Positions 14,312-39,179 are shown, counted from the stretch's first letter. The stretch: DNA of 64,000 nucleotides from Macrostomum hystrix (GCA_950097015.1 CATNEN010000026.1:1178001-1242000); one strand, 5' to 3'. Made by a program: numbers and translations. Notes: generated by a model not told the origin, from the letters alone.

Positions 14312-14405
14312 AACATCAAGGATGTCGCTGGCGCCGGCGCCGGTCGCTAACTGGCGATTTGAGCGCTGACCTGAGACTGACCAACACACAATAGACTTAC
14401 AATGG
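14312..14405 (+). pseudogene. 5'-truncated remnant of a type A prepropeptide gene
   Basis: AAC ATC AAG GAT GTC GCT GGC GCC GGC GCC GGT CGC TAA encodes NIKDVAGAGAGR*. It is followed by the type A 3' flank CTG.CGAT.TGAGCGCTGACCTGAGACTGACC. No signal peptide or promoter lies upstream. Confidence 0.8.
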
Positions 14406-15197
14406 ACTTGTGAAAAATACTCATGCAATAGGCTGCTCAATAAATGTTTTATTTGGTGTCTCTCGTACCAAGGTCCCTGAGCTCGATTCTGCGGCGAGGT
14501 CCTACTCATTTGGGAAATTCAGGGCAGGTGTACACACCTGTGTGAGCATGTGCCTGCAACGGTATCTGTGTGCATGTGTCCAGAATTGCCTCCTCGCTGG
14601 CTGTGGATCCAGTGTCACCAAATGGCGTGCCATTGCCCTGTAGCAAAAATATGTATTATATTTCATTTCCTTTGAATTGTGAGTCACAGATTGCATCGCA
14701 TATAGACAGTATCAGAAAACTTGACGATATCTTAAAAGGAGCTATCTATCTGTCCGTATTGCTGAATTTTCGAAAAGAACGAAAGTACTGCCCCTAGGAC
14801 TCGCCAGGACTAGCAGAACTTGATGCCTACGGCGGGTCAAAATGAGCTGTTCCATTAGATTAGGATATACATGTATAAATTCAGCTGATCATTCCTCACC
14901 ATTACTCACAACCGTATTCCGACCAGCCTTTCCTTGAGCTACTCGTACAACTCAACAACTGTTCCAATAATTCTATATAATTACGTCGCGAAAAAACAAA
15001 GAACCGCACAAAAATGTTTTCTTGGGAAAAATACTCATACGTTTACGATAGGCTGCTCACTAGAGGTTTTATTTGATGTCCAAGTTATTACATAACTGTA
15101 CGGAGCTGTAAGACTGATAAGAGTAGTACATTATGGGGAGTATAGAGTAAAGTCCATTGTGTGTCGGTCAGTCTCAGGTCAGCGCTCAAATCGTCAG

Positions 15198-15431
15198 TTA
15201 GCGACCGGCGACGGCGCCAGCGACGTCCTTGACGTTCCTGATGATGCGGATGACCTTCCTGATGCGGATGCCCTTCTTGGCCAGGTGCACGGCTCCCTCG
15301 TCCGACAGACCCTCGATGTTGGACAGGGCCTCCAGGGCGGCCAGGGTGTCCGCCTCATCCGACTGCTGGCTGGGGCTGGCGGCGGCCAGGGCGGCGCACA
15401 GCAGGAGTCCGAGAGCGAGCTGCCACTTCAT
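15198..15431 (-). CDS. Secreted cationic prepropeptide type A, copy A1 (I57 variant)
   Basis: Intronless 77 aa: signal MKWQLALGLLLCAALAAA, acidic pro-region, KK, GIRIRKVIRIIRNVKDVAGAVAGR. TATA and conserved box upstream. Confidence 0.9.
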   Translation of the reverse strand: MKWQLALGLLLCAALAAASPSQQSDEADTLAALEALSNIEGLSDEGAVHLAKKGIRIRKVIRIIRNVKDVAGAVAGR

Positions 15432-15529
15432 GATTGAGTCGGGTCTGAGCTGTCTCTTGATGAGGCTGAGAGTCTGAGTTTGACTGTTAGTCGTTGAATT
15501 GTCCTCCTTGCACAGTCGAGGGCTCCGAA

Positions 15530-15558
15530 TTTATAGCCGAGTTTTCGCACGTGTTTCC
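15530..15558 (-). promoter_or_regulatory. GGAAACACGTG box + TATA of A1
   Basis: The box lies 117 nt upstream of the ATG; CTATAAA follows it. Confidence 0.75.
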
Positions 15559-17029
15559 GGTCAGGCATCGAACTGCACTGTCAGGTGACATTGAGCTCAC
15601 AGTGCTGGAATTCCCTTCCCCATGTACTATGACTAGGCGGTTTATGTACTAGGCGGTTTAATCCTTCTTGAAGTCTAACTGCATTTTTTGTTTAGTCAGT
15701 GCACAGCGTGCTTGTAGTATTAAATGTTTCTGTTCTTGAATGGACGAACATTTGTTTGCTCTAAGAAAATGTTTCCTTAATGCAACAATTTCTTTTACGA
15801 GATTATCATTATCATTACCTGATTGCAGATGCGAGCTAGAAAGTGGCCACGCAAAGATTGTGTGCAGTTTGCGGGCATTAAATATTTGCTCTGAAGACAA
15901 AGTTGTTTCATCTATTAGGCAAACCTTTCACAGCTCGCTTCGAACTTTCAAGCTCAAAGTTTCCAGTGCTCTTGCTAGATTTCCTTTTGGTATGCATCAG
16001 ATATGTCAATCGATTTCGTCCTTAACGTAATGGCATTATGCTTCCTTTCACTTAAATTTGAACAATTTCGTTTGCAGATCTAAGGCTAGAATTACGATTT
16101 TAACTTACTCCTGTTGAAGGAGAATGGTGAGAATCGAATTAAGCGATCTTGTATATGAAATTCGAATTCAAAAGCAATTTTGATTTGTATATTGCAGGAG
16201 GGCTGTGGGTACTAGAACATAGTTTGGTGACACTAGACCCGCTGTCAGCGAGGAGGCAATTCTGCCCATTTCGCTGACTCCTGAGCACACACGCACACAG
16301 ATACCGTTCGCAGGCTCACACTCAAACAGCTGTGAACACCTGTCTTGACTTTCTCATCGTCAGGCGGTGTACACTCTCACTGTGCCTTGGAGGTTGGCCC
16401 TCAATGGCGCAAATTGCACGACAAGCCCCCAAACCTTCTCTACGCGGCTGCGCCCCAAAAAAATAATAATTTGGCAAAAGAGCGTGTTAAAAATAAAAAT
16501 ATCGCGTCACAGCTACACATGTCGGATTATTCATCAATCAAATCTCTTTTTTGATCCTCCGTAGTTGAATCTTCGTTGAATCTTGTCATTGGTTTAGTCA
16601 CGAAAGTGCAGTTTTTGCAGTAGTTTGAAAAGTAGGTAAATTAAAATATTTGCAGGTCATTTTAATAGTTTTAATTTATTTTAATAGCTCTAAATCAGTC
16701 GTTTTTGCTACCCTAAAGTTTTTTGAGTCTCCGCGGCAAAATTTAGTCTTTGAAACACCGAGAAGCACCTGGGAAAAAGAAGTCCACGCTTCGTCCCTAC
16801 CACAAATCACTCAGACATCTGTCAGTCATTCCGAGCAATTTTCCGTGTTCCATTAACACGGAACAGCCGCAGCTATCGCGCGGACCATTTGAAGGCTGCG
16901 TACGGCTGTTCAGTCCGTGGACCGGAGGGACGCCACACCCACCCTCAATTGCCCTAGCTGATGCTGGTACACATTTCATAGTTTTTGGGTGAACTGAAGC
17001 AATGTAGAGTTAAGTGTTCTACAATGTAG

Positions 17030-17124
17030 AGTTAAAGGACTCAAGTTGTTCCAGTCGATTCGAGATTCGAACCCCCGACCTTCAACTCATGAGTCTGACG
17101 CTCTAGCCGCTAGTCTAAAACCCC
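17030..17124 (-). mobile_element. SINE-like family A head fragment
   Basis: Reverse complement reads TAGCGGCTAGAGCGTCAGACTCATGAGTTGAAGGTCGGGGGTTCGAATC. Confidence 0.7.
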
Positions 17125-17883
17125 TTAAGGACAAAGGATATACTCGTATGAGCTAAAAAGTTCGTCAAATAAAAGTAGACGTAGATTGGACATGCGCAGG
17201 ATTAATGTAAGAATATATACCGGCTATTGAGGGTGTAATAACTAAGGCCGGGGCTATCTTTAGTGTGCAGACAAAACTTTCACCTTTACCGCCACACTGA
17301 GCGCGCGTCTATATTATTTGCTAGAACTGGGGTGGCGACACCCACCCCGCTCCGCAACCAATCAAACGACCCAGGTGTACACCTGGGCCTGGCTCACGTG
17401 CGTACACACTACAGAGGGTATCAATGTAATAATAAAGACTGGTGATTGAGGGCATCAATGGCTGTGTCATCAAAGTCATAGACATTGACGCCGGAAATAG
17501 CCAGTCTCTATTGACATTGAAAACCGCAGTGAACCAGTAGTCCATTAATGTCTGCTGCCAGTGCCACCCATTTGAGACGCGGCAAAATTGGCGGTCAATA
17601 ATTTAGACCATTAATGACCGCTGCTGATGTCTATGGCAAGCACCATGACAGACGAATCCTAGAGGTGGGAGAGAGAAAAAGTGCAGAGTGTGGAAAGAGG
17701 GCAAGCACCATGACAGACGAATCCTGTCGAATGCAGAGTGTGGAAAGAGAGCCCTCTTTGTCTATGGTCAAAATCAACACAACTCGAATCAGAGTGATAT
17801 AAAGACTGTTTTCCGCCCAGAGCGAATGGAATTTCATCTGATTTTGAACGAACCGTTTTTGAGCCTACGTACGACAGATTAAG

Positions 17884-18317
17884 ATGGACGAGACATGCCC
17901 ATATCCGACTGGTCTGCTTCATTTATTTAGGCAGCGTCTGTGACGTCTGTGGCCTGATGATGGAACAGATTCAACAGAGAATGGAACGAGAGGCCGAGAT
18001 GGAAAGAATGACGATGGAAACCCTGCCCGAGCTAGGAATGGAGGACGTGGATGAACTTCTGAAGGTATGCGAAGACTCCAAAACGTAGTGCAGATATGGC
18101 CAGATTATCCGATGTCATCAGCAGTATTGGTTCTGACGTCGACGAAGTTCAGGCACTGTCCGTAGCGGCACCGTTGCAAAAACTGGTGCCGAATCAAGTG
18201 ACGGCACCGGGCGACAGTGAGCGACCGGTGAATAGGCAAATGGTGGCCTCCGCAATCAGTGGCACTTTCCAAAACTGCACCTTCAATTTGTACATGGGCA
18301 ATGCCGATCAGCAGTAA
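17884..18317 (+). pseudogene. Broken small ORF with a C-terminal SGTFQNCTFNL tail, possibly a Crypton/DUF3504-type element remnant
   Basis: An acidic coding-like stretch (MEQIQQRMEREAEMERMTMETLPELGMEDVDELLK) is out of frame with 18096-18317. The FxNCTFN tail recalls Crypton-derived KCTD1/ZMYM/DUF3504 proteins (recall only). Confidence 0.3.
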
Positions 18318-19902
18318 AAAGATAATCGACACGTAGAAAACTGTCTATCTGACTATCTACCTATTGCGACGTTATTCCTGTTACTGTAATACATTTTCAT
18401 GCCGAGAGTATCCGTAATGGTGGTCCTCATTTGCCACCTATATTTGTCTGTGTTTATGCCATGTTTGTTACTCAATCAAAAGTGCAAATATATATGTCAG
18501 AAACGCGTGACTGCTACCTCACGCAGAGAAAAGACAACCTTGTGCCATAGACAAAACGTGAGTCGCAGAATTCATTAATGACAGCTGAGAGCGATTTTCA
18601 ATGGCGGGAATCCCAGCGTTGCTCAATGAAAATGCACACTTAACGTTTGAAGTACGGGAATCCAAAGGGAATTCCCACGGAATTCCCCATAGACATAGTT
18701 TAACGATGTTCGTTAAAACCCTTGCTCAGCGTTGTTCAATGCAGGTATATGTTAGCTCTCATTTTCTTTCGACAGTCAAAAGCATAGTCCCATGTCAATG
18801 GTCCCAATCAAGCATAGACCTGACCTACTATTCTGACAAAAAAAATATAAATAGAAATAACTTTGAATTTGACGACTACAGTAGCTAATCCCACTGCAAT
18901 ACTCGTATAGATTCGACACCAACTCGCCGACAGTCCCTGATATTGTAAGGCAGTTTCTTCTGGCTGCTGAAAACACCGTCAGGTTCGTCTGAATTCCGGT
19001 CTCTGGAAATGAGCTTCCAGACAGCTTTGCCAAAAATATGCAGCAGCCCCCTTGAGAACGAAAATGCCTGCCATTGCCGGGGCCTTACCAGCAGAAAAAG
19101 ACAATGCTATTTTCTCCCCTGGGGAAGACCACAATACCCCCCCTGTCTGCTTCACGACAGCTCCCAAACTAAATGACGGAATTTCGTGAAATGTCAAATA
19201 CCCTGGTAATAAGGACAACTTACTCTCTGTATGAACCTCTTTGGCATATTTATATTCGTTGAGAAGTGTATGAATTAACAATATAATCAATACAAAATAG
19301 TCAAAAATGGTAGCCGACATGATTACATAATAAAAGTTTGAAAGCGAAAACTTTTTGTCTTTTTTGTGGCTTCTTGCCACCTACCTCTGTTGTTTTTCTA
19401 CTGTTAGCAGAGGCCGCGGCCCAAATGCATCCTTTGATGATGTCTTCAGATTCGAGAAAATCCCACATCCGGCTCGTCCGATTACCTGCCGGGCGAGCTG
19501 ATTTATTCTCTGGCGAAGATCACGCTGCAGAGAGGAGCAGCTGACCTCCCAGACGGGCCAGCGCTCTTCGTAACGCGCTGCAGCAAGTCAAGTAAGGCAA
19601 TAATTAAAATCCATGCTACTCGAAAAGCTACAGAGTTGTTTACTCATCCGCTGACAATTTCAACCATAAGCGTGTGCAGTGACATCAAAATGGCAGGGAG
19701 AACGACTCGACTGTGTAAGTTGTAAAGCCAAGCGTGCGATCTCAAAGTAAACTAAACACAGGTTAAGTAAATAAACTCCAACTAAGTGGATGAAGTTCTA
19801 CTCGAAGGACTTTTTGCACAACTCGAAGTTCAACCGGCTCTTGGTTCGGGTCAGCAACTGTGTACTCAACCCACGGGTCGGTGTGAAGCTTAAAAGCTCA
19901 CC

Positions 19903-19933
19903 GGAAACACGTGGCAAAAAAACAAGCATAAAT
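19903..19933 (+). promoter_or_regulatory. GGAAACACGTG box + CATAAA of B1
   Basis: The box lies 118 nt upstream of the ATG at 20031. Confidence 0.7.
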
Positions 19934-20030
19934 GCGAAGCCCCCGGCTGGGCAAGGAGGACAATTCAACGACCAACAGTCAAACTCAGACTCTCAGCCTC
20001 ATCAAGAGACAGCTCAGACCCGACTCAAAC

Positions 20031-20270
20031 ATGAAGTGGCAGCTCGTTCTCGGACTCCTGCTGTGCGCCGCCCTGGCCGCCGCCCTGCCCAGCCAGCAGA
20101 TGTCGAGCGAGGAGGCGGAGACCTTGTCGGCGCTGGAGGCCCTGTCCAACATTGACGAGTCCAGCCTGACGGAGGAGTCAGCTGCGCACCTGAGCAAGAA
20201 GTTCCGCCTGATCCGCGCCGTCAGGACCGCCGTCACGATCGCCAAGGTGGCTGGCATGGTGATGGGCTGA
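20031..20270 (+). CDS. Secreted cationic prepropeptide type B, copy B1 (79 aa)
   Basis: Signal MKWQLVLGLLLCAALAAA, pro-region with 8 D/E, KK, FRLIRAVRTAVTIAKVAGMVMG. The ORF-track start at 19932 lies in the TATA region; the homologous ATG is at 20031. Confidence 0.9.
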   Translation: MKWQLVLGLLLCAALAAALPSQQMSSEEAETLSALEALSNIDESSLTEESAAHLSKKFRLIRAVRTAVTIAKVAGMVMG

Positions 20271-21283
20271 GTGCTTTTGACAAGTACACCAGTTTCTGAC
20301 CGGACAAAGACCTAATATCGGCTTATAACGTATAATAAATGTGTATCTTACTAGTAAAACAAAGCGGAGCTGCTGTAGGTTGTATTTCGATTGTAATAGT
20401 AATCAACAGCTCTTTCTTGGAGCTGCAATAAAATACACTAGATAGTACCCGTCAGCCCCAAAGCATCGGTTCTTTTGATTTTTTTCGTTGAAAACTAATT
20501 TCTGGAATATTTCAGAACTTATAAGTAATATGCGAACTAGTTCGCGACAGAGATCTGAGAGTCTGAGAAGTCAGATAAAATAACAGGTAATTAAAAATGT
20601 ATTAAATAAAAACAAGAAAAAAATGCAATAATACGAGCGTAATATCTGTGGAGGTCTGCGGACACTGGTACATCATTTCGTGACACTAGTCCAGCAGCCA
20701 GCGTGGAGGCAATTCTGACCATTGCGCTGCCTCCTGAACACAGACGCACACGGACACCGTACACAGGCACACACACGCTTGTGTGTACATCTGCCCTCAA
20801 TTTCTTATTGTTAGGTATTGTCCAATTCCATTGTGACTCGGGGTAGTGCCTGAAGGGTATGTACTGTTTAGTCGTCTAATCATTAAGTTGCAATTGTGCT
20901 CTTTATTTTGTCGATTTAATCGAATCGACTCTTACTCATTAAACCTAAATTACAATAAGAAAATAGCGAGTTTGATAAGAAATTCTATTTAAGCCAATCG
21001 GCGAGTACAGTAAAAGTGTTCACTCTTCCCCAGCAGGCATGAGTCCTATCGTCGATCGTCCTTAAATGTGATCGTCCGCATACAAGAGAATGTAACAAGA
21101 ACCAAATTGCGGGGGGGCAATAAAGTCGGAATTTATTTGATCGATGTTGAAATTTATTTTAAGCAAACAGTTAGTAAATCTAAGCAGAGCTCTTTAGTAA
21201 CTGATACAGATATTTTTTATCGGAGGTTGAGAGTAAAGTCCATTGTGTGTCGGTCAGTCTCAGGTCAGCGCTCAAATCGTCAG

Positions 21284-21517
21284 TTAGCGACCGGCGACGG
21301 CGCCAGCGACGTCCTTGACGTTCCTGATGATGCGGATGACCTTCCTGACGCGGATGCCCTTCTTGGCCAGGTGCACGGCTCCCTCGTCCGACAGACCCTC
21401 GATGTTGGACAGGGCCTCCAGGGCGGCCAGGGTGTCCGCCTCATCCGACTGCTGGCTGGGGCTGGCGGCGGCCAGGGCGGCGCATAGGAGGAGTCCGAGA
21501 GCGAGCTGCCACTTCAT
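21284..21517 (-). CDS. Prepropeptide type A, copy A2
   Basis: 77 aa, consensus protein; two synonymous Leu codon changes in the signal peptide. Box at 21634-21644. Confidence 0.9.
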   Translation of the reverse strand: MKWQLALGLLLCAALAAASPSQQSDEADTLAALEALSNIEGLSDEGAVHLAKKGIRVRKVIRIIRNVKDVAGAVAGR

Positions 21518-22969
21518 GATTGAGTCGGATCTGAGCTGTCTCTTGATGAGGCTGAGAGTCTGAGTTTGACTGTTAGTCGTTGAATTGTCCTCCTTGCACA
21601 GTCGAGGGCTCTGAACTTATAGCCGAGTTTTTGCACGTGTTTCCGATTAGTGATCAGTCTGCAGACTGACAGGCAGGTGAGTCTGAGCACACAACGTGGT
21701 TTGATTGAGCTTGCATTTTCCTGTCCGACCATATCCTAATCTGTGATCAAATCTCAGTTTAGTCGCCAATATCGTCTAAGATCAGCCATGCAGAGACATT
21801 TCTTCCAACCCTTGCAAACCATGCAGTCAGCGCATATTTACTTTGCTAAATGTTAACCAACACTTGGAAACAATACATGTTGAGAACACATTACATGCTT
21901 TAAACACGCGGGCATATAGACTCACATGGAAACTGAAGAGAAAACTCTCTAACAGAAGTATAGACTGACTGGTTGTCCACATGTACACTGGCCTTTTTGG
22001 TACTGGTATATTTCTTCGAAAAACTTCATCGATAACTCTAACACATTTTTCTAATATTTTCAACATCAACTTCGCTTGAATAAACGGGCACTATTTTCTT
22101 CAAAGAGCAAAACATTTTACGATAAAGATCTTCACAATCACGTTTTGGCTTTAAAATCAGCATTTTGATATTATTAAATTTCTCTTACGCTATTTTTCGC
22201 CCAAGGCATGACCATGGGACGTTTTTAAACACCCACTGCCACTGCCGATAGCTCAGAAACCGAATGACGATTTCGTGAAAGTGCAACATTTGAATATAAT
22301 AATTTTTATAAATTATTGAACAAATATGGATTCGCCATAGTGGATTATACAGAGCTGTCGAGATAAACATCTCTCCATAATATTTATAATTTAATGTCTT
22401 AATTTTTCAGTTGCTCACCCAGATTTATTCTACATTTGTTTGTTCCCGCAATGCTGCACTCCAGCTCACTTAACATTCTGATTCCCATAGAATTTCACAC
22501 CGCAGTGTAATATAAAATCCGATTTCGTCGTTAATGGACGTTTAATGGGCGCATTCTGAGCCACGAATCTATCGTCTATGGAAATGCGAAGTCTTGAACC
22601 AGTGTGCCATATAATGGTCCCGAAAACGGGGCCCATTAAACCATATAATGGGCGCCAAACCAAATCGAATTTCATATAAAATAGTGGCTGCTCAATTTGC
22701 AGTCTATGGTTAAAAAGTCCTCGGCCACGCTCAATAGTCCTCGGCTCGCTTCGCTCACCTCGGACCATTAAACGCAGCCTCAGACTTTCTAACCACAGAA
22801 TGCCAATTAAGCAGCCACTATCATATACTTAATCCCCAGCTTGGCCCGGCCTATTGGCTATTAATTCTGTGCATTTATTATTTAATCGACATATAGTCTA
22901 TGGTCACAGTTGCTGTAAACCGTTTTAGGTTTGCAATCTCGTGAGCCGGGCCAAGCTTTAGGATTAAAT

Positions 22970-23024
22970 CAAGGACAACTTAATAACTCCTTGTTATTAA
23001 CAAGGAGTTATTAAGTTGTCCTTG
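22970..23024. mobile_element. 55-bp perfect palindrome (27-bp arms, 1-nt loop) flanked by an 8-bp direct repeat GATTAAAT
   Basis: CAAGGACAACTTAATAACTCCTTGTTA-T-TAACAAGGAGTTATTAAGTTGTCCTTG, with GATTAAAT at 22962-22969 and 23025-23032. Confidence 0.75.
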
Positions 23025-23595: not shown

Positions 23596-23760
23596 ATGCT
23601 AGTTGTCCTTGTCACCAGGGTCTCCAATAAGAATCGCTAAATATCTCAATGAAGCTGACGTCGGACGGCTTTGAAAGTTAGTTCATCGTATAGGGCGGAA
23701 AGTTTTGATCCGAATGGTGCGCCTTCACGAATATCGGTCATTCAGTTTGGGAGCTATCGT
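23596..23760. mobile_element. Interspersed non-coding repeat family C (probable non-autonomous DNA transposon)
   Basis: TGCTAGTTGTCCTTGTCACCAGGGTCTCCAATAAGAATCGCT recurs at ~52715-52880. Related segments occur at ~19140-19330, 22245-22370, 26745-27060, 30000-30090 and 52540-52640. Confidence 0.55.
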
Positions 23761-24393
23761 ACATTACGAGCTTCAGCTTTAACGCACAGAATTTGCGCAG
23801 CTTAATCAAAGAAATATTTAGAACATTTTCTCTAAAGTTAATCAGGGCCTCCAGGGTGCAAGCCGCCAACTCAATGAAGCCCTACTTTGGTATCATCGCG
23901 ACTCAACATGTGAGAAAATTAGCTCGTACATTTAGCTGCGATTTGTATTACAGGCTAATTTCAATGATCTCCTAATTACTTGACTATTAAATGGGCGAAT
24001 TGCGCAGATTAGTTTAGATTCTTAAGCTATTCTGTTGGCATAGTACAAGTGGAAAATGTGCAGAGTTCATTGCTTTGCAAACAGATTCTGAGATGAATGT
24101 GAGAAAGAAGCTCATGTAGCGACATTCTTGCTCAAACATTGAGCGCTTGGCTGATGTGAGGTCGTGAGATCTTTCTTACCTAAACCAACTGAAGACCCTG
24201 ACTGCCAAGGGACGGGTCGCGCATGCCCTCAAAGCCACTTACTTTTGTGCAACTTAAACACAAACTGGAAACACGTGCCAATCACTATACATAAAATTGG
24301 ATCTACTGCTGACTGTGCAAGGCGAACAGTCCAACGACAAGTCAAGCGCAGATTCTCAGCCTCATCAAGAGACAGCTCAGACCCGACTCAAAC

Positions 24394-24642
24394 ATGAAGT
24401 GGCAGCTCGTTCTCGGACTCCTGCTGTGCGCCGCCCTGGCCGCCGCAATGCCCAGCCAGCAGATGTCGAGCGAGGAGGCGGAGACCTTGTCGGCGCTGGA
24501 GGCCCTGTCCAACATTGACGAGTCCGGCCTGACGGAGGAGTCAGCTGCGCACCTGAGCAAGAAGTTCCGCCTGATCCGCGCAGTCAGGACCGCCGCCACG
24601 ATCGCCAAGGTGGCTGGCATGGCTGCCATGGTGATGGGCTGA
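24394..24642 (+). CDS. Prepropeptide type B, copy B2 (82 aa)
   Basis: KK followed by FRLIRAVRTAATIAKVAGMAAMVMG. Box GGAAACACGTG at 24267-24277. Confidence 0.9.
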   Translation: MKWQLVLGLLLCAALAAAMPSQQMSSEEAETLSALEALSNIDESGLTEESAAHLSKKFRLIRAVRTAATIAKVAGMAAMVMG

Positions 24643-26027
24643 GTAAGTGATCAGCTATGACTCGGACTCCTGCTTCGTAATTGGACTCTAACCTGAATCT
24701 AACCTGAAAATCTTATTTATTATTTACTTTAGATAACTATTGAACACGAATTGGGGTGCAATTATACATTTACAGTTCAAAATACAACCCAGCTTTACTG
24801 CTCTGTTGCAGCCGATTGCGAATACACATTTTAGTCTTGAAGCCTGTTGTTTTAAAAGATGGCCAACATCATTGAAAGTGGCATAGCCGCTGGTTGCTTT
24901 TCTGGGTGTTAACTGGCCATAGACAGTTTCACAGGTGAGACAGGCTCCAAAAGGCAATCAGGGTCTCCCATAATCTAAAGATGTAAGGGTAACTAAGAGC
25001 TTCGTCAATTAATCAACCTGCTCTGATTTGCTGAATTGCGTTTTACTCTGCGGCTCGAAATTCTGCTGTTTGTAACATTTTTGCGGCTCTTGTCTACGGC
25101 TCTTCAGCTTATACTAAAGTTCATAGGACTCATAGAAACGAGAGATCAGGAGTTAGCCCAAGGAGTACCAGGACTGTGATAGATTGAGTACATTGAGTCC
25201 AATTCTTTTTAAGTACAGCATAAATATGTTAGCAGAACTGATTGGCTTTTCCCTAATAAATAAAGGGCAGGTGGAACTGGGACTGCCGCTCTTGATTGTC
25301 AGCATTTCGTGACGTCCCTCCATACGAGAAAATGAACTTTTATTAAACTAACTCACAAAGATTAGCTGGGGTAAAATGTAAGCGGATGGAGCGGCGCCCT
25401 AGTCCATGGACTGAACAGCTGTACATAGTCTTTGGATGCGCCAGATGTACCACTGGCTGTGATCAATCACATCTTGGCTGAATGTCATTCCTATGTCTAT
25501 CTTATTCTATCAAAAGCGAAGGTTAATGTTGTATTGTACTGCCTTTGGCAACGACTGTTTCATTTCGAACTGTACTTACACAGTACTCTCGTAAATCTAA
25601 ATGGTCTATGCGATTGATTGATATTTCATTGGCTCATAACAATTTTTTACTCTTAATCTGAACAATGATATACCAAATAATCGTTGTCTATAAGTTATTC
25701 GAAATTTCCAACGTTTTTAGCAGCGAAAATGACGACAAAAACGACGGACATATATGTTCTTAGTACAATAGTTATTTTGCGTAACCGACCGATACGAACG
25801 ATATTACTGAAACCAGTTCGCAGATGAAGGAAATGAAAACTAACACTCCAACAAAAACTGTTGCAGTTAGAAGAAGTTTGGACGTCTATATTTTAATTTT
25901 GTTGCTATTGGATATAATTTAACATTATGTGCGTGTTCACAGGTCTCTATGGCCAGAACATTATGGGAGGCTTAATGTAAAGTTCATTGTGTGTCGGTCA
26001 GTCTCAGGTCAGCGCTCAAATCGTCAG

Positions 26028-26261
26028 TTAGCGACCGGCGACGGCGCCAGCGACGTCCTTGACGTTCCTGATGATGCGGATGACCTTCCTGACGCGGATG
26101 CCCTTCTTGGCCAGGTGCACGGCTCCCTCGTCCGACAGACCCTCGATGTTGGACAGGGCCTCCAGGGCGGCCAGGGTGTCCGCCTCATCCGACTGCTGGC
26201 TGGGGCTGGCGGCGGCCAGGGCGGCGCACAGCAGGAGTCCGAGAGCGAGCTGCCACTTCAT
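26028..26261 (-). CDS. Prepropeptide type A, copy A3
   Basis: 77 aa consensus. Box at 26378-26388. Confidence 0.9.
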   Translation of the reverse strand: MKWQLALGLLLCAALAAASPSQQSDEADTLAALEALSNIEGLSDEGAVHLAKKGIRVRKVIRIIRNVKDVAGAVAGR

Positions 26262-29085
26262 GATTGAGTCGGATCTGAGCTGTCTCTTGATGAGGCTGAG
26301 AATCTGAGTTTGACTGTTAGTCGTTGAATTGTCCTCCTTGCACAGTCGAGGGCTCCGAATTTATAGCCGAGTTTTTGCACGTGTTTCCGATAAGTGATGA
26401 AGCTGCAGACTGACAGGCGACTTAAGCACTCATTGGGCTGAGCTTAACGGCCGATGGCCAACACAGTTTAACGTACTGCGGTGAATATTTAGCTAGTCCG
26501 AATTTACGCACACATTTAGTTCGGCTTTTACAATGCCGCAAGGGTACATTCTGTAAACTGAATTGTTTCCCGGTCTCTAGAGTTGGTTTTGTTTGCTCTG
26601 TCAAAAAATTTCCGGTTTCAGACACTGTCTAACAATTTGAGGCGTACTTTTAGACAGTAGGACTATTGCTCTATTAAAAATGAGCATTGATTCTTGAATT
26701 GAGACGGTAGAATAGGGGGTATTTTTAATACCCACTGTCTTCGTCACGATAGCTCAGAAACCGAATGAATGATTTCGTGAAAGTGCAACATGTGAATCTA
26801 AATTTTCCGCTCAATACGATGAACTAACTTTCAAAGCCGTCCGACTTCAACATCGTCAAGATATCCGGCCAGCGACTCTTGTCGAAGACCCTGGTGACCA
26901 GAACAAGTAACGAGTAATGATAGCCGACATGATTACATTAAAAAATGCCCAAATTGGTGGTTCTTGCTACCAGACACTCTGACTAGAATCGTTAAATATC
27001 TCGACGATGCCGATGTTTTGTGATTCTAGAAGTTGATTTATCGGATAGAGCGGAAAATTTTAGCCCGTGTTCTGGATTTTTATGGCGATCGGTTGAATAT
27101 ATTTGGAGATACAGAAAGAAGAAAAATATTGGTATTTGAAATACCCTATCCACATTGCACTGTACATGACAATGGGATTTTACCTTTTTAGATCATTGAA
27201 GTGACTGGTGCAATAGGCTGTAGGATGTTGGCATCAAAATTTATTCGCAAGCGACTCGCAAGTAGCTTTGAAGTCAGCTAAAAAAACGAAACTTTGTAGC
27301 GAAAGCTCGTACTGCTCTCAACGAAAGCACGTCTACTACATAACGTCTACTAAGATTCCCCGTAGCTTTGTCTCGATCGGCTCCTAACGGATTCTCTTGG
27401 CTGCCGAGCCCAGCGGGAGGCTCATCCTGCAGTGCTGCCTTTTGCCTGCATGGCGCTGGCTGACAAGGGCGGTTTGATGAAGCTCAGCCTCAGTCACCTG
27501 ATCGCAAGGCTTGCTTCCGTGGTAGCTTTTTCGTATCGTTCTCGCTGCTTCATCTTTGTCTTCACATTCATTGGCGTGGCAACTCGCAATAACGAATGCC
27601 GCGAGTGGTGACGGCTGGGGATTGTAATCCTGAGCATTGTCGCCCGGATTCATGTCGCCGGCGTTGTGCGGTTGTACCAACGCTCAAATAATTTTCTAGG
27701 TTTTGCTTAGTCCCTTGCCTTCGCTCCCACCGCGCTTTGGTCGTTTTCTCTAAAACGGACGACAAGGATTAGGGGGCTGGCTGAGAAAGAATCTGAAACT
27801 TTGCGCTATTGCTTGTTTGGTGAAGCCTAGCATAGAGAGTCGAGGCATTTTTAGGTGCCTCGAGGATGATGAGGTGGTCTCGTAGGAGCTTCAGACAGCC
27901 TTTAGTCACTGGCCATGCTCCTCGATGGCTCAAGATGAGAATTAATCATGCCATGCTCACCTCGTGCGATTTAGCACGAATTGCTGTGGTCGATAACATT
28001 AGTAGTTATAATGTTTGCAGGAGGGCTGTGGACACTGGCACATGCTTTGGTGACAGCCGACCCGCTGCCATCAAAAATGATCAGGAAATATTTTGACTTT
28101 CAGGCCGCGTCGAATTTTTGGAAGGCCATGACGCCTTTAAACTCTGAGAAGCTTGCTGATCCGGTCATGTCTTTCGTTACTTTCTCGAATGTGAGAATCG
28201 TTTGCCCCGTCGAAGTCACGAACTAGTTCACCTCGACTAGAACCTGTTTGATGCGGTGCGTTATCATCCTATAGCGCAACACCAACTTTGAGCACAAATT
28301 GGTAAGCCGGTAGATGCGCTCAGTAACGGCATTGGCAAGCAACTGCAACTCGTTTTGGAATTGCGGCTCAGAGACGTGAACTGCTACAGCTACTTTTCTA
28401 ATGGTTGTGTTTACCACACAATTTATTCAATCGAATAGAAGATACGAAAGCTTGTGTACCTTTTCGTTGTGATTTCATTTAGAATCATTTAGTATATCTT
28501 CAGGCCAGCAAATCTGCTGCATCACAAAGCTCACTGACTACATGGGGGTCGTACAATGAAGCGTTCGTAAGATAAGTTTGATCTTAGCTCCTATCTCAGC
28601 AGTCAATTTCAGTCCTTGAGTTCGAAGTTAGGGATACTCAAGCTTCACTCATGCGAGAATAATGGCTAGAGCAACAGTTGAACAGTGCTGCCAACGACAG
28701 TCATGCATAACCTTTGGAAAATTGATGGAATCGCTCAGAGTAGGAAGAGGTTAACTTGCGAAACCAGAATGTAACTTTTCGTGTCGATCAGAGGAATACA
28801 TGAATATGAATATTAATAAGGAGTCTCATTAGGTGAAATTACTTGCTTATTATTCAGTCAGTTCACTAACACGAGTATACGAATATGCTCGTATAATAAG
28901 CATAACTAAAAGATGCTCTTTATGAATAACAACTCTTGAAGAAATGTTTTAAACAGCATTTATTTACTTATTTATTTAACTCTTTATTCTCTTTTTTAGA
29001 GAAGCACTCATCTTGTAAATATTCCGAGAAAAGCGTAAAGTCCATTGTGTGTCGGTCAGTCTCAGGTCAGCACTCAGATCGTCAG

Positions 29086-29319
29086 TTAGCGACCGGCGAC
29101 GGCGCCAGCAACGTCCTTGACGTTCCTGATGATGCGGATGACCTTCCTGACGCGGATGCCCTTCTTGGCCAGGTGCACGGCTCCCTCGTCCGACAGACCC
29201 TCGATGTTGGACAGGGCCTCCAGGGCGGCCAGGGTGTCCGCCTCATCCGACTGCTGGCTGGGGCTGGCGGCGGCCAGGGCGGCGCACAGCAGGAGTCCGA
29301 GAGCGAGCTGCCACTTCAT
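29086..29319 (-). CDS. Prepropeptide type A, copy A4
   Basis: 77 aa consensus. Box at 29436-29446. Confidence 0.9.
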   Translation of the reverse strand: MKWQLALGLLLCAALAAASPSQQSDEADTLAALEALSNIEGLSDEGAVHLAKKGIRVRKVIRIIRNVKDVAGAVAGR

Positions 29320-31004
29320 GATTGAGTCGGATCTGAGCTGTCTCTTGATGAGGCTGAGAATCTGAGTTTGACTGTTAGTCGTTGAATTGTCCTCCTTGCA
29401 CAGTCGAGGGCTTCTAATTTATAGCCGAGTTTTTGCACGTGTTTCCAGGTCGTGTTCAGTCTGCAGACTGACAGGCGACTTAAGCACTCATTGGACTGAA
29501 CTTAAATGGCTAACTATTTAAATAGTTAATACTATAGTGCATATTAAGTGCATTCTAATCTACACAGACTTGGTCATTTTCACAAGCCTTTAATGGTACA
29601 TTCTGTAAACTGAATTGTTACCCAGTCTCTAGGTTGGTTTTGTTTGCTCTCACAAAAAATTCCGTCTTTAAACACTTTCATATTAGGCGTAATTTTGTAC
29701 TTTTGGACCTTTGGACTAAACTGTAGACTGTTTGACAGTTTGCACTCTACAACTTTTTAGACTGAGTATCCCTGAAATTCTTGAATGTTTACGACAGAAT
29801 CTATGGACTAATTTGGTAACGCTTTTCGACAATAGTTCGTGGTTAAAGCAAGGCACAGTAGAGGACAAATAGCATTGCTTATGTATAAACCACAGAGTAT
29901 TACATCTAAATGTAACATGCAAAGGCATAAACCACTTTGGCGAATCCGTATTGGTACAAAAAGGAAGACATTTAGAAGTTAATCAATCGAAAATAGTCAA
30001 CAATGATAGCCGACATGGATTCATGATGAAATTTTGTGAGCAGAAAGATTTTGTGATTCTGGAAGTTGTTTAATCGGATAGAGCAGAATTTTTTCCAGTG
30101 GATTTTCATGGCAGTTGGTTTAAACAGTTAGGGAGATACAGAAAAAAAGTAAAATGTGGGCATTTGAAATACCCCCATGGTCTTTCAACTGTTAGGTGCC
30201 GCTTCTATCGTTTCATTCGTCTAAAGCTAGAATTCTAAAAGTCGTCATCCAGGACTTAAAAGTGTTATTAATGTAGATACCACGTTATTTTATGAATAGA
30301 TCACTTCAGTGCCAGCACCTGTTCGCGTGGATCGGAAGTGGTCCAGGCTAATGCGAGTTGTCTGGCAAGGCCGTTGCACGAAGCAATGTCGATGTCGTTC
30401 TAATGTGGCCATCAGCTTCCACGTCTCAGCTAATGTACTTGAGTACGCTGTGCTTTGAAATAGAAGACAGCCAAAAATGACCAGTAGGCTGCCAAGGTGA
30501 CTCCAAAGGCCGCCTTGTATTATTTTCAACAAAGAACACCGAATTGCCAAGTGCAAGAAACCTGCAGCATCGTCTGACCAACTGTGCTGCTGCATGTGAG
30601 TTCATTTACCTTGTGAAATGTCATTAGTATTCCCAGCAGTCTCTATGGATCCCAAAACGTATAGACTAAGCGCGATAATCAGACATTTTTCTCTGCATAA
30701 CAACACAAATGTTTCCCCTGATGAGCATCGCAAGTGCCTCCCAAGCGATTCTGCTATAAAAACAATAAAAAACTGGCATTAAGCTCGTCTGACTATAAAG
30801 AAGATAGGTGAATAAATAGAATCCGACCCCGAAAAGATCTGGGTGAGACAATGCCCGCCTATCTGATGGCATATTTAAACAGTGACGAAGTCTTTTTACG
30901 ACGTAGAAAGACTTTTTAGTAACTTTTAGGTTTTTATCAAGTAGAGGCATCCAAAATGTTGAGAATTCAAAGCTAACTGCCAGACTGCAGACTGAACACG
31001 AACC

Positions 31005-31032
31005 GGAAACACGTGTTAAACTCGGCTATAAA
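31005..31032 (+). promoter_or_regulatory. GGAAACACGTG box + CTATAAA of A5
   Basis: The box lies 116 nt upstream of the ATG at 31131. Confidence 0.75.
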
Positions 31033-31130
31033 TTAGAAGCCCTCGACTGTGCAGGAAGGACAATTCAACTACTAACAGTCAAGCGCAGACTCTCAGCCTC
31101 ATCAAGAGACAGCTCAGACCCGACTCAATC

Positions 31131-31364
31131 ATGAAGTGGCAGCTCGCTCTCGGACTCCTGCTGTGCGCCGCCCTGGCCGCCGCCAGCCCCAGCCAGCAGT
31201 CGGATGAGGCGGACACCCTGGCCGCCCTGGAGGCCCTGTCCAACATCGAGGGTTTGTCGGACGAGGGAGCCGTGCACCTGGCCAAGAAGGGCATCCGCGT
31301 CAGGAAGGTCATCCGCATCATCAGGAACGTTAAGGACGTCGCTGGCGCCGTCGCCGGTCGCTAA
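31131..31364 (+). CDS. Prepropeptide type A, copy A5
   Basis: 77 aa consensus, with synonymous TTG and GTT variants. Confidence 0.9.
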   Translation: MKWQLALGLLLCAALAAASPSQQSDEADTLAALEALSNIEGLSDEGAVHLAKKGIRVRKVIRIIRNVKDVAGAVAGR

Positions 31365-33132
31365 CTGACGATCTGAGCGCTGACCTGAGACTGACCGACA
31401 CACAATGGACTCTACGCTTTTCTCGGAATATTTACAATATGAGTGCTTCTCTAAAGAGTAGTAAATAGATAAGCACAAATAATTCAACCATCACTGCTTT
31501 AGCAACATATATTTTCTCTAGATATTTATTTTTTTTAGACATTTTAATTTCTGTCCCAGAGATGTAATAAAGCGTCTCTATACTGAAGAAAAACGAATTA
31601 GCAAACTGAAAGTTGTATGCAGAGGTATCGGCAAATACGTACTATGAAGCAAATTTAACATAATATAAGGTCTTTAAAATATTAATGTCGATGTCTTCCT
31701 ATAATCGACTTGAAGAGTTACAGTTTGAAATCGCGACTTCATGTAGAATTACAAGTTACGAGTCATGTTGCATCAGTGGTTATGCATGACTGTTGTTAGC
31801 AACAGTTCGTTAAACTGTTGCTCTATTGACATTGTCAGCTAGTGAAAGTCGAGATGCAGCAGATTTGCTAAATGATAAAAAATGATAAAAAATGAAATCG
31901 CAACGAAAAGTACGCAGGCTCTCGTCTCTCTTATGAGTCGATGGATTAAAATGCAGGGCAATGGACGACTAACGACCAATACAAAAGTATGAGTGTACAC
32001 CTAATACAGACAATACAAACAGCAATGGGGCCGGCTCCGATCTAGGCATATTGCATTTGCTCCACAACATCCGGAAGATAAGCATTTCATACTGCGAGCC
32101 TCCATAACAAGCTGCCCAGGTTCCATAATTTCGGAATTATTTGGGAACCCAACATACTAGCTCGTATTCCCTGTCCGTAGGGAACGATACGACCACAGGT
32201 GCAAGCCATGCAATCAGGCGACTGAGGCTGAGCTTCATCAAATCGCCCTTGCCAGCCAGCGGCACGCAGGCAAAAAGGCAGCACTGCAGGATAAGCCTCC
32301 CGCTGGGCTCGGCAGCCAAGAGACTGCCGTTAGGAGCCGATCGAGACAAAGCTACGGGGAATCTTAGTAGATGTTATGCCCAGTGCTTTCGTTGAGAGCA
32401 GTACGAGCTTTCGCTACAAAGTTTCGTTTTTTTAGCTGACTTCAAAGCTACTTGCGAGTCGCTTGCGAATATATTTCTATCAGCCCCTTGGCAGCGCCAA
32501 ATTTAGATGCCATTTTCGATACCCTATCGTCTTTCGAACAAGCCAGTACAATGAAAAAAAGCATAGTTTCCCATGGTGCTATTAAAAACTCAATAACAAG
32601 CCTAGAAAATAAAGGCTCGTCATTCAGAGAACAAGCGTATCAAAAGCTGCTGGCGTGCCTAGGTTGAACAACGATCTACTTAAGGAGAACTAAAATAGTC
32701 CATCGATTCTGCCGTCTAAACTCAGTAACAGTTTATGCTCATTCTTAAGAGAGCAGTAGTCCGACTGGCTAAAAATTACGTCTGAAGACTGTTTGAAAAC
32801 GGAAATCTTTTGACAGAGCACACAAAACCAACTCGCGAGACTGGGTAACATATTTAGCACCCCACACAGGCTTGTAAAAGCTAAATTAATGACCAAGTCT
32901 GTGTAGTTAATGCACTACAGTATTAACTAGTTAAATAGTTAGCCATTAAAGTTCAGCCCAATGAGTGCTTAAGTCGCCTGTCAGTCTGCAGACTGAACAC
33001 GACCCGGAAACACGTGCAAAAACTCGGCTATAAATTTGGAGCCCTCGACTGTGCAAGAAGGACAATTCAACGACTAACAGTCAAACTCAGACTCTCAGCC
33101 TCATCAAGAGACAGCTCAGACCCGACTCAATC

Positions 33133-33366
33133 ATGAAGTGGCAGCTCGCTCTCGGACTCCTGCTGTGCGCCGCCCTGGCCGCCGCCAGCCCCAGCCAGCA
33201 GTCGGATGAGGCGGACACCCTGGCCGCCCTGGAGGCCCTGTCCAACATCGAGGGTCTGTCGGACGAGGGAGCCGTGCACCTGGCCAAGAAGGGCATCCGC
33301 GTCAGGAAGGTCATCCGCATCATCAGGAACGTCAAGGACGTTGCTGGCGCCGTCGCCGGTCGCTAA
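33133..33366 (+). CDS. Prepropeptide type A, copy A6
   Basis: 77 aa consensus. Box at 33006-33016. Confidence 0.9.
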   Translation: MKWQLALGLLLCAALAAASPSQQSDEADTLAALEALSNIEGLSDEGAVHLAKKGIRVRKVIRIIRNVKDVAGAVAGR

Positions 33367-33759
33367 CTGATATTTTTAGCTCCTGCCTGACACAGATCGA
33401 CACGAAATAGACTTGACACTATGCCTCCCGAAATTTACTCTCGAAATTCTCTCAGTCTGCTGCGCGTACAACCACCTAACTACTAACATATTTTTCCAGC
33501 CACTATTAATCTAGCAGTTGTCAGTAACTACCTGTGATAGAATTCGATATAATATTGGTGAAATCTTAATAGAAACCTAAATTAATAGAATAACGTGATG
33601 TTAGACACAATGAGCAAATAAAAAATATATATTTATTTTTTAACTATTTCATCTAAACATGGGAAGTAACATACGTACACAAAAGCTTTTTTTTTATTTT
33701 CTTATCTTTTTGCCTTAGAAACTGCGCAGGATGTCTGAAGTGAACAGAATTAGCGCCAG

Positions 33760-34330
33760 CGGGTCGTCAAGGTGGTGGAAGGTGTGCTGTGTGCTGTGTC
33801 CCGCTGTCTCGAAGCGGTCTTCGACGTCGGTGTTTAGGCCAGGCGGTGAAACCTGAAAGAAACCTGAAAGAAGCTGTCGACTTCCACGTTGCTGACGTTG
33901 AAATAGTCCCCGATCACCTGGGGAGTGGTTGCCGCGAATCTCTTGTCGAATCGCTTCCGCGTCGAGCCGACTCTCCTGCCTGGTCCCAGCGATCGTCTTG
34001 GTGACGCCTGCTAAACACCGTCAGCTTCAGCGGGCGTCGAAAAGGAGGCTGCTGCGTTAGGTTGTGGCACGAATGTCCCGGGTGCCTAGATGTGGTGAGG
34101 AATTTCATTGAGTGCAGGCTAGACCAGTATGATTCGGCCTGGATCGGCGCCCAGACCGGGGCGGCATTCTCCATCACAAATCGGGAAATCGGTCTGTAGG
34201 ATTCCGGCAGCGTCTCCTTGCTGCTTCCCCAGGAGGTAGCTAGGGCGCGAAGAACTTTGCAGTGTAAAGCTCAGTCCTTAGGTTTAAATACTTCGGGACA
34301 AGCGAGATTTATAGAACGGGCTCATTTCTG
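33760..34330 (-). mobile_element. Decayed non-LTR retrotransposon fragment (C-terminal RT region)
   Basis: The minus strand reads KVLRALATSWGSSKETLPESYRPISRFVMENAAPVWAP, resembling the LxxLAGTSWG..KETL..TY......LEYAAPVW segment that follows LINE RT domains. Reading frame is broken. Confidence 0.7.
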
Positions 34331-35471
34331 CGATGATGGACCGCTAGCCAGACACACAGCAGTCTTGAGTGCGTCTTGTGTGCGGGATAGCCAGCGAACT
34401 GACTCGGTTGTCTCTCACACAAAGGTCCCTGAGTTCGATTCCGTGGCGAGGCTATCGTTCATTTGGGGCGCAGCCGCGGAGTGAAGCCTTGGGAGATTTT
34501 TGTTCGATTCACGCCCTTGAAGGCGAACTTCTATGACACAGTGGACGTGTTCACTGCCAAACAATGAGGAATTTAGGGTGTGTGTACACACCTGTTTAAG
34601 CGTGTCTGCGTACGGTATCTGTGTGCATGTGTGCTGGCTACGAGGTGTGTCACCAAATGATGTGCAATCGCCCACAGGCCTTCTGAAATTTTCCCTATTA
34701 TTATCATAAACATGCCTAAAGCTTACTGCACAATACTCTTCTCGTCAGGAGTAAGTAAAAGCGCTCAACCAAAGATGAAAAAGCAGTCGAGCTTGTAAAA
34801 AAATAATCTAGATAGTCTTGCGATGAACGCTATGGCAATGGGTTAAGTCTGATACATCAATATGCTGACACCAAATAAATGCTCAGTCGTCAACTTCGCT
34901 GCTTCATAGCGTTCCACCGAGGGGGAATTTCCATGGATCAGACATGTGCGCTTATAAATATACACGTGTGCGATAATTTCATGCACATCAGGTAATAATA
35001 ATATTCATATCGGGTCAACTCCTGACACGAATGTCAGCCCTGACATTAGCATCAGCTGATCGAATGTTCAGATGTTTATTTGTTAAATCAGTGACAATTA
35101 TTTATCGTACTTCAGGACGTTCCGTGTTCTAATACTATACAAGAACGACCAAGAAAGTTGACAAAACTCATCTGGCCCAGTTCGGTAAGAAATAATTTCT
35201 CTTAAGTTTTGCTTCCCATAAGTTCTGGGACTTGTTGAGAAGCTTAGGCATTATGACTAGCAAAAGCATTAAAAATAATAACGAAAAGTAAATGCTGGGA
35301 AGAATTTTCGTACTGTTTTATTTGAATAAACTTCTGATGATAGAAACTCAGCCCGCACATGCACGCATAGTTCTTAGCATTGATAGCAACTTGCCAGAGG
35401 AGCATTAAGGGGAGTATAGAGGAAAGTCCATTGTGTGTCGGTCAGTCTCAAGTCAGCGCTCAGATCGTCAG

Positions 35472-35705
35472 TTAGCGACCGGCGACGGCGCCAGCGACGT
35501 CCTTAACGTTCCTGATGATGCGGATGACCTTCCTGACGCGGATGCCCTTCTTGGCCAGGTGCACGGCTCCCTCGTCCGACAGACCCTCGATGTTGGACAG
35601 GGCCTCCAGGGCGGCCAGGGTGTCCGCCTCATCCGACTGCTGGCTGGGGCTGGCGGCGGCCAGGGCGGCGCACAGCAGGAGTCCGAGAGCGAGCTGCCAC
35701 TTCAT
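35472..35705 (-). CDS. Prepropeptide type A, copy A7
   Basis: 77 aa consensus. Box at 35822-35832. Confidence 0.9.
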   Translation of the reverse strand: MKWQLALGLLLCAALAAASPSQQSDEADTLAALEALSNIEGLSDEGAVHLAKKGIRVRKVIRIIRNVKDVAGAVAGR

Positions 35706-36490
35706 GATTGAGTCGGGTCAGAGCTGTCTCTTGATGAGGCTGAGAGTCTGAGTTTGACTGTTAGTCGTTGAATTGTCCTCCTTGCACAGTCGAGGGCTTC
35801 TAATTTATAGCCGAGTTTTTGCACGTGTTTCCGATAAGTGATCAGTCTGCAGACTGACAGGTGACTCAAGTGCACATAGAATCTCTGGCGTAATTCAGAA
35901 AGTTTGTCTTGATTTTTCGAGAACAATCCCAGAGCGTCTAATATTGGACCGCTAATATTTAGTGTCCTAATTTATTTTTTTGGGGTTGCTCTTCCTTTGC
36001 TTAGCAAATATTTCTTTAATCATTTTGTTGAGTCGAGTTGCACTTTGGCTTGAGTTATGTTGGTCTTTGATTCCAAAAACGTAGGTCTAATTTTATGCCT
36101 CTCAAATATACTCGGGCATATGGACACTTCAATGATGTTTTGGTCACAATTATTAGTCCCATTTAAAAATTAATCAGGGCACTAGAGCGAATGAATCTGC
36201 AAGTACGCACTGCTTTGAATTTTATATTTTAGTCGGCCACTCAAAGTAGTTTTCTGGGTTTACTTTCTGATGAAAGCTTGAGACAACACAAAAAACTCGA
36301 GTTCTTGGCTGCTCTGCTGCTCTGTGTGATTAATTTCACCGAGTTGCGTGAAGCTTAAACAAAAACTGGAAACACGTGCCGAAAACTTGGCTATAAGTTT
36401 TGAGCCCCGATGGTGCAAGGAAGACAATCCAACCACCAAAGTCAAACGCAGACTCGCAGCTTCAGAGACAGCTCAGAACCTAACTCAAAC

Positions 36491-36733
36491 ATGAAGTGGC
36501 AGCTCGTTCTCGGACTCCTGCTGTGCGCCGCCCTGGCCGCCGCCCTGCCCAGCCAGCAGATGTCGAGCGAGGAGGCGGAGACTTTGTCGGCGCTGGAGGC
36601 CCTGTCCAACATCGACCAGTCCAGCTTGGCCGAGGAGGGAGCCGTGCACCTGGCCAAGAAGCGCTTCCGCCTGATCCGTGCCGTCAGGACCGCCGCCACG
36701 ATCGCCAAGGTGGCTGGCATGGTGATGGGCTGA
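36491..36733 (+). CDS. Prepropeptide type B, copy B3 (80 aa, with an A-like GAVHLAKK junction)
   Basis: KK followed by RFRLIRAVRTAATIAKVAGMVMG. Box at 36368-36378 and CTATAAG at ~36391. Confidence 0.9.
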   Translation: MKWQLVLGLLLCAALAAALPSQQMSSEEAETLSALEALSNIDQSSLAEEGAVHLAKKRFRLIRAVRTAATIAKVAGMVMG

Positions 36734-39080: not shown

Positions 39081-39179
39081 GGGATTGGTGAAGGATGATA
39101 ATGTACTCGTAGTTTAACAGTAGGACTACCAATCCATTTGGCCGCCCGTTTTTATACCAAGGGGGGAATCCCCCTGACA

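Follow-up and report, generated by a model that had tools for sequence, protein, structure and literature searches.

Why would a flatworm genome keep ten small, closely related genes for cationic peptides within 22 kb, seven of them nearly identical? We address this question in a 64-kb stretch of the Macrostomum hystrix genome (GCA_950097015.1, CATNEN010000026.1:1178001-1242000; hereafter the window, numbered from its first nucleotide), in which a first-pass annotation had reported seven intronless genes of a type A, three of a type B and one remnant. The array is confirmed, and its genes belong, as judged from alignments and profile scores, to an unnamed, large, Macrostomum-restricted family, a membership that we regard as solid. 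With somewhat better than even confidence, we propose that these genes encode processed, amidated, secreted, membrane-active host-defense (antimicrobial) peptides that are produced from a lineage-specifically expanded tandem array.

Ten genes built on one 460-bp unit

Open reading frame (ORF) listing and a regular-expression scan of the window recovered seven type A ORFs of 77 amino acids and three of type B, with 79, 82 and 80 amino acids, and a profile hidden Markov model (HMM) of the family, run against every stop-to-stop ORF, matched those ten alone. Together with a BLASTN match for the remnant, this bears out the annotated gene count in full; genes and remnant are confined to 14.3-36.7 kb, where they occupy both strands, and the rest of the window holds none. 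The array lies far beyond chance, since the type A coding sequences are pairwise 98.3-100% identical (mean 99.1%) and an invariant 11-mer, GGAAACACGTG, has ten copies in the window, one 5' of every gene, with 0.05 occurrences expected by chance. The description of the genes as intronless stands for the coding sequences, which are uninterrupted in all ten, but does not extend to the untranslated regions (UTRs), which may contain introns.

Pairwise BLASTN with 1.5 kb of flank on each side limits the similarity between genes to a unit of about 460 bp, reaching from about 155 nt 5' of the ATG to about 70 nt 3' of the stop. Each unit consists of the 11-mer and an ATAAAT box, followed by a 5' UTR of about 75-100 nt, an ORF of 77-82 codons and a short 3' UTR; in the unit alignment the 11-mer lies about 127 nt upstream of the ATG and is followed, after about 10 nt, by (C/T)ATAAAT. 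From left to right, with unit, coding sequence, motif and strand in brackets, the genes are A1 (15131-15585, 15198-15431, 15548-15558, minus), which encodes a V57I variant; B1 (19902-20350, 20031-20270, 19903-19913, plus), with 79 residues; A2 (21210-21680, 21284-21517, 21634-21644, minus); B2 (24267-24644, 24394-24642, 24267-24277, plus), whose 82 residues include a three-residue tail insertion; A3 (25961-26418, 26028-26261, 26378-26388, minus); A4 (29032-29476, 29086-29319, 29436-29446, minus); A5 (30977-31418, 31131-31364, 31005-31015, plus); A6 (32976-33428, 33133-33366, 33006-33016, plus); A7 (35418-35861, 35472-35705, 35822-35832, minus), which lies head-to-head with B3; and B3 itself (36348-36733, 36491-36733, 36368-36378, plus), with 80 residues and a KKR site. 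The remnant (14311-14398, plus strand) consists of 88 nt from the 3' part of a type A unit, comprising the end of the coding sequence and 3' UTR; in a BLASTN search with the whole gene unit it aligned to A2 unit positions 358-445 at 93% identity, and it has no promoter, no prepro part and no match to the family HMM.

The type A copies evolve in concert, and they do so only within the gene unit. Their mean identity is 96.4% in the 75 nt before the ATG, 81% in the promoter block and again 81% in the first 66 nt past the stop, and it falls outside the unit to about 47%, a random level given that unrelated sequence aligns at 43%. Purifying selection is visible in the coding sequences, where five of six variable nucleotide columns are synonymous, and only A1 departs from the protein sequence that the other six type A genes share. 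This identity profile fits units that were duplicated long ago at the DNA level and have since been subject to gene conversion and purifying selection on the transcribed core, as does the weak similarity of about 70% that A3, A4 and A6 retain in their upstream flanks. Seven genes held identical by gene conversion would amount to dosage amplification of one peptide. Recombination or gene conversion has also acted between types, since B3 is a mosaic in which the signal peptide and tail are of type B and the last ~10 residues of the pro-region match type A. We rejected an origin of the 460-bp units as retrocopies, because each extends upstream far enough to contain the promoter module and no A-rich stretch marks its 3' boundary in the alignment. 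The GC content at third codon positions (GC3) of the family genes is 0.89 in a region of about 45% GC, and GC-biased conversion possibly contributes to the overall pattern. Antisense ORFs of 78-139 amino acids overlap every family gene (for example 15159-15437 and 21068-21487, both on the plus strand); they follow from the very high sense-frame GC3 and do not point to antisense genes.

One prepro cassette and many tails

Translations of the window genes agree with the precursor architecture given in the first-pass annotation: a hydrophobic leader of 18 residues; a pro-region containing seven (type A) or eight (type B) aspartate or glutamate residues and no lysine or arginine; a KK pair; and a cysteine-free tail, with five arginines, two lysines and one aspartate in type A and three arginines and one lysine in type B. 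These tail compositions, and the net charge of +6 assigned to type A, were also as annotated, the charge calculation giving about +6 for the amidated type A peptide and about +5 for type B. Linear cationic antimicrobial peptides (AMPs) combine a net positive charge with about 40-60% hydrophobic residues, and both types fit the class by this standard; their basic residues recur with a period of three, at positions 3, 6, 9, 12 and 15 of type A and 2, 5, 8 and 15 of type B. Type A contains an internal RVRK, so that a shorter product may also be released.

The relatives of these genes strengthen the annotated plan of signal, acidic spacer, dibasic site and cationic tail. Every homologue found is a Macrostomum lignano hypothetical protein, except for one on a 929-bp Logan contig (SRR31628392), and a search of 1.84 billion representatives with the family profile yielded only Macrostomum-type proteins; E-values reached 1e-15 for single-sequence and 1e-37 for profile searches. 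Among the relatives are BOX15_Mlig024774g1-3, BOX15_Mlig026130g1-3, BOX15_Mlig022076g3, Mlig010792g3, Mlig014625g1/g3 and others, and in M. lignano they form small tandem groups (for example five genes in 20 kb at locus L006) that add up to dozens of paralogues. In an alignment of 16 sequences, the signal peptide MKWQL[AV]LGLLLCAAL... is invariant or nearly so from M1 to L15, the acidic pro-region carries an EALSN-type motif, and E34, S37, E45, K52 and K53 are invariant. The M. lignano proteins thus share with those of the window a nearly residue-for-residue identical signal peptide, the acidic pro-region, the KK pair and a single cationic tail, and their genes share the intronless structure, the tandem grouping and the upstream module. 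They differ in that the window's A and B tails occur in no annotated M. lignano protein, in that the window array of 10 genes in 22 kb is larger, and in that most M. lignano tails are short, being period-2 (V/I-R)n or His-rich, whereas the window tails are predicted to be helical and are 21-24 residues long.

The contrast between a constant cassette and variable tails is already visible within the window. Between types A and B, the nonsynonymous (dN) and synonymous (dS) divergences are 0.03 and 0.15-0.24 in the signal peptide, 0.17-0.25 and 0.32-0.42 in the pro-region, and about 1.0 and about 0.7 in the tail, where the resulting omega of about 1.3-1.5 is indicative only because it derives from saturated sites over some 22 codons. 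Across the family, 34 distinct precursors yielded 25 distinct tails, which are single in each precursor, range from 7 to 33 residues and fall into radically different classes among paralogues: (V/I-R)n tails that have 8-10 residues once the terminal Gly is lost, GFHVHFH, FHLHLP, Trp/Arg-rich 24-33-mers, a type with two Cys and the 21-24-residue A and B tails of the window. The Logan contig, which may derive from another Macrostomum species, encodes a member with a 33-residue Pro/Arg-repeat tail, preceded by the same upstream module. The short M. lignano tails are period-2 amphipaths and strand-like. The pro-region has a net charge of -2 to -12 in all 34 precursors, tail charge reaches +14, and the two are inversely correlated (Spearman -0.64, with non-independent data points).

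A terminal Gly, alone or followed by basic residues, is the substrate motif for a carboxypeptidase plus peptidylglycine alpha-amidating monooxygenase, and 20 of the 25 distinct tails carry it, as a final G, GK, GR or GKR. This motif, together with the dibasic site, would also suit neuropeptide- or hormone-like signaling through receptors, and the short M. lignano tails (8-10 residues, RL-, RI- or RF-amide) are neuropeptide-sized; flatworm NPP/FLP precursors likewise have dibasic cleavage sites and a C-terminal Gly for amidation, to which the invariant KK and the G[KR]0-2 tail ends of the family correspond. Neuropeptide precursors are, however, normally low-copy and conserved. Here each precursor holds a single tail, the tails are hypervariable and not conserved among paralogues (with the A-B tail dN as given above), tandem paralogues number in the dozens with seven near-identical type A copies in the window alone, the high tail charges are balanced by the pro-region, and the profile search found no relatives outside one genus. 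We therefore regard a signaling role as quite improbable.

The relatives also bear on whether the window ORFs are genes at all. A module of GGAAA[A/C]ACGTG, about 10 nt and (C/T)ATAAAT precedes all ten window genes and, in the eight M. lignano or Logan loci L001-L008, 16 of 16 family ORFs, the most divergent included. The M. lignano gene models come from an RNA-seq-guided transcriptome with TransDecoder ORF calls (PMC5730564), from which it follows that the relatives are transcribed. That the window copies are non-functional, as untranscribed duplicates or the cargo of repeat elements, is extremely improbable: a collection of about 15 billion proteins contains none of their exact products, one remnant is truncated and the syntenic M. 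lignano copies look degenerate, but all ten ORFs are intact, the variation among type A copies is almost entirely synonymous, GC3 is high, transcript-based models exist for the M. lignano paralogues, and the promoter module is kept across species and paralogues and travels with the unit, so that no retrocopy is involved.

Synteny and the sequence around the array

The window is collinear with the M. lignano contig NIVC01001632 through an EML-like gene, sequence similar to the family, a protein kinase gene and a gene corresponding to a 327-amino-acid ORF. The synteny boundaries, both outside the array, are on the left the 3' exons of the EML-like beta-propeller gene (10991-13952, plus; Pfam PF23409, E=5e-15) and on the right the kinase gene, in two coding blocks (38074-39113, minus; Pfam Pkinase, E=2e-35), whose best M. 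lignano match, P0033, shows 73% identity. Collinear identity is 70-72% in the long alignments of the kinase and 327-amino-acid ORF genes and 72-79% in the shorter pieces of EML exons. Such divergence, together with the absence of the type A and B proteins from the protein collection, led us to reject M. lignano itself as the source of the window; the species is a different Macrostomum, and, to judge from the divergence, probably not the sibling of M. lignano either. The 327-amino-acid ORF (42713-44053, minus), near the kinase, has no Pfam match and corresponds to an annotated 438-amino-acid M. lignano gene at about 70-72% nucleotide identity.

Between the kinase and EML-like genes, the M. lignano contig has an interval of only about 6 kb, which contains a satellite of 41-bp period and two pieces derived from the family. 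The satellite, about 2.7 kb long, fills most of the interval (about 15400-18100 of the contig). One, a type-B-like copy, has a single frame disruption that may be a long-read indel error; the other resembles the 3' part of type A and has no prepro region. With only these two degenerate pieces in the syntenic interval, the ten-gene array is a lineage-specific expansion. The tail encoded by the A-like piece agrees with that of the window's type A at 15 of 23 residues, and V/I exchanges make up five of the eight mismatches, so the type A tail is older than the split between the species.

This comparison bears on a possible reproductive role, in which the peptides would be prostate or seminal-fluid products evolving fast under sexual selection or conflict. 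Reproduction-related genes of Macrostomum are reported to evolve fast and turn over (PMC7336406, PMC5977470), and the family shows hypervariable tails and copy-number differences between species. Yet the type A tail is conserved between the species about as well as the neighboring kinase, a charge-neutralizing pro-region and AMP-like tail classes are atypical of the seminal proteins described so far, and the gene identifiers in the searched part of the M. lignano germline/neoblast supplement include no member of the family. We consider a reproductive role decidedly unlikely.

Several other features of the surrounding sequence were recorded. A dispersed repeat of about 300 bp has at least four copies in the window (7935-8245, 16864-17125, 37019-37279 and 55488-55779), one of them inside the cluster, and occurs three times in the M. 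lignano contig (171-376, 18771-19035 and 19568-19868), with identities of 75-81%; Macrostomum species probably have it in common as an interspersed element. Long minisatellites with periods of 9-20 and up to 75 copies lie on both sides of the cluster (3918-4550, 5353-6198, 6768-7175, 10100-10532, 45098-46301, 46741-47103 and 60125-60690) and none lies inside it; these arrays account for the local spikes in GC skew and AT skew. Transfer RNA and Rfam scans of the window found nothing.

Candidate function and known systems

The proposed host-defense function can be set out as a sequence of steps. The 18-residue signal peptide would be removed after AAA, the acidic pro-region would neutralize the cationic tail during transport, and a prohormone-convertase-type enzyme would cut after the invariant KK; a carboxypeptidase would then trim the C-terminal Arg of type A, and the exposed Gly would be converted to a C-terminal amide. 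The expected products are a 22-residue type A peptide and 21-24-residue type B peptides, of the charges given above, which would be helix-prone and carry a basic stripe of period three. Secretion, processing, amidation, membrane activity and antimicrobial function are all steps that we infer from the precursors.

The same steps would serve cytolytic toxins directed at predators or prey and stored in epidermal, rhabdite or pharyngeal glands. Linear venom cytolysins have the same precursor layout, venom families show the same combination of hypervariable tails and lineage-specific expansions, and an array of identical genes would deliver a high dosage. The sequence offers nothing that separates a toxin from an antimicrobial peptide, but the relatives' tails of 7-10 residues, (V/I-R)n and His-rich, are atypical of pore-forming cytolysins, and a toxin role seems to us rather unlikely.

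A number of observations weigh against the antimicrobial interpretation. The first-pass annotation described the peptides as amphipathic, and their alpha-helical amphipathicity is modest: the helical hydrophobic moment at 100 degrees is 0.46, which is not significant against shuffles (p=0.12). The peak of the moment at 110 degrees, with 0.67 for type A (p=0.03) and 0.64 for type B (p=0.005), speaks for the interpretation. A perfect alpha-helical amphipath is not supported at 100 degrees, and the period-3 description takes its place. AlphaFold2, run on the family alignment, placed helices at 4-18, 26-37 and 47-75 in an all-helix hairpin; the helix at 47-75 is in favor of the interpretation, but the model is of low confidence (mean predicted local distance difference test score 61). 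Dibasic cleavage and amidation are equally typical of neuropeptides and venom peptides, and the saturation of the tail dN and dS limits what their ratio can say. The literature searched holds no data on antimicrobial activity or on expression at barrier or immune sites for the family, the supplements of M. lignano papers that were searched have no usable tissue or induction entry for the relatives, and, as noted, the exact A and B proteins are absent from the large protein collection.

The transcript ends are a further point on the same side. An AATAAA lies 64-150 nt past the stop in six genes, at variable positions; A3 and A5 have only one-base variants of it, and A6 and B2 have neither an AATAAA-type signal nor a one-base variant within 200 nt past the stop. 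For M. lignano P0006, P0009, P0012 and P0014, 5'-partial ORFs derived from transcripts begin 75-150 nt before the ATG and reach or pass the ATAAAT box. With such ORFs, ATAAAT can be taken only tentatively as a TATA box that sets the start site; either transcription begins farther 5' than such a box would imply, or there is read-through between the tandem genes.

The first-pass annotation also put the locus forward as a candidate undescribed one and recognized no named family in it, which is correct as to naming but not entirely as to description. Pfam, PDB sequence and PDB profile searches gave no meaningful match, and none of the 16 members has a Pfam match. Weak matches to PF22991 (Lock_Gag1-like) and PF17609 (HCMV_UL124), which cover a 17-residue acidic stretch or the signal peptide, were rejected at 12-18 bits against a cut-off of 27; only P0004 sums to 27.1 bits, owing to its duplicated pro-region, and the window proteins have no PF22991 match. 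By these comparisons, membership in any named family fails. Queried by full text with the sequences of the peptides and signal peptides and with the M. lignano gene identifiers, the literature library that was searched returned no paper. File S5 of the most extensive survey to date (Irvine et al., 2023; PMC10414684) does, however, list BOX15_Mlig024774g1/g2 as fAMP-LP-142 and BOX15_Mlig026130g1-3 as fAMP-LP-71, both SignalP-positive and called AMPs by 100% and 91% of predictors, respectively. Both subgroups were removed at a "same genome" filter and never synthesized; these two fragments of the family were dropped because the filters discarded single-genome groups. The main text never mentions Macrostomum and does not recognize the subgroups as one family, and the pipeline dropped peptides shorter than 10 residues, which excluded most M. 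lignano members (PMC10414684). The family defined here unites these two subgroups with the short-tailed M. lignano genes and the ten-gene array.

More tentatively, and with a likelihood that we place a little short of even, the array may be one part of a host-defense superfamily that evolved in Macrostomum on a "one cassette, many tails" principle, with different members amplified in each species. In such a superfamily, the promoter module, signal peptide and acidic propiece would be held constant, partly through gene conversion, and the tail would diversify into helical, beta-strand (V/I-R)n, Pro/Arg-repeat, Trp/Arg-rich and His-rich effectors. If true, this would be the first real AMP superfamily of free-living flatworms and a third independent origin of the dermaseptin/cathelicidin design. 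Innate-immune effectors of flatworms are almost unknown, and the family is a concrete candidate for the missing effector repertoire; irrespective of function, the locus offers a clean natural case of concerted evolution restricted to a 460-bp gene unit and an example of a convergent "conserved prepro cassette, hypervariable tail" design. Transgenesis, RNA interference and gnotobiotic culture are established in Macrostomum. Resources further include a microbiome model (PMC10024726), a single-cell multiome atlas (10.1101/2024.09.03.611027) and positional RNA-seq (PMC10468722).

Flatworms are reported to lack the traditional lophotrochozoan AMP groups, including big defensins, CS-alpha-beta peptides and myticalins (PMC10414684). 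The cationic flatworm peptides that have been mined from genomes, as the present ones were, include trematode helminth defense molecules and the intronless mesco-1 to -3 of Mesocestoides corti, of which mesco-2 is helical on anionic membranes (PMC11546468); we treat both groups as a different family, since none of them was recovered by the homology searches made here.

Further parallels lie in other phyla and concern design. A conserved cassette joined to a variable tail is the layout of dermaseptin- and cathelicidin-type AMP families, and the conserved prepro cassette and hypervariable tails described here follow the pattern of known AMP superfamilies. Hydra arminins, like the window family, are restricted to one genus and couple a signal peptide and an anionic N-terminal region to a cationic C-terminal one, but neither they nor other restricted AMP families are homologous to it, the profile search having returned only Macrostomum-type proteins. 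Cathelicidins likewise join a conserved pro-part to radically different tails (helical, Pro/Arg-rich or Trp-rich), a range also found among the Macrostomum tails, whereas the Macrostomum pro-region is Cys-free and about 35 residues long, with no cathelin domain, none of its four Cys residues and no Pfam match. The preprodermaseptins of the FSAP family (PF03032) resemble the window genes in having a conserved signal and acidic propiece, a dibasic site and a hypervariable, often amidated cationic tail, and in forming multigene families with accelerated tail divergence. They differ in phylum, in the absence of sequence homology, in using KR where the window precursors have KK, and in that frog preprodermaseptin genes carry an intron and the window coding sequences have none; the likeness is thus one of analogy, not of membership.

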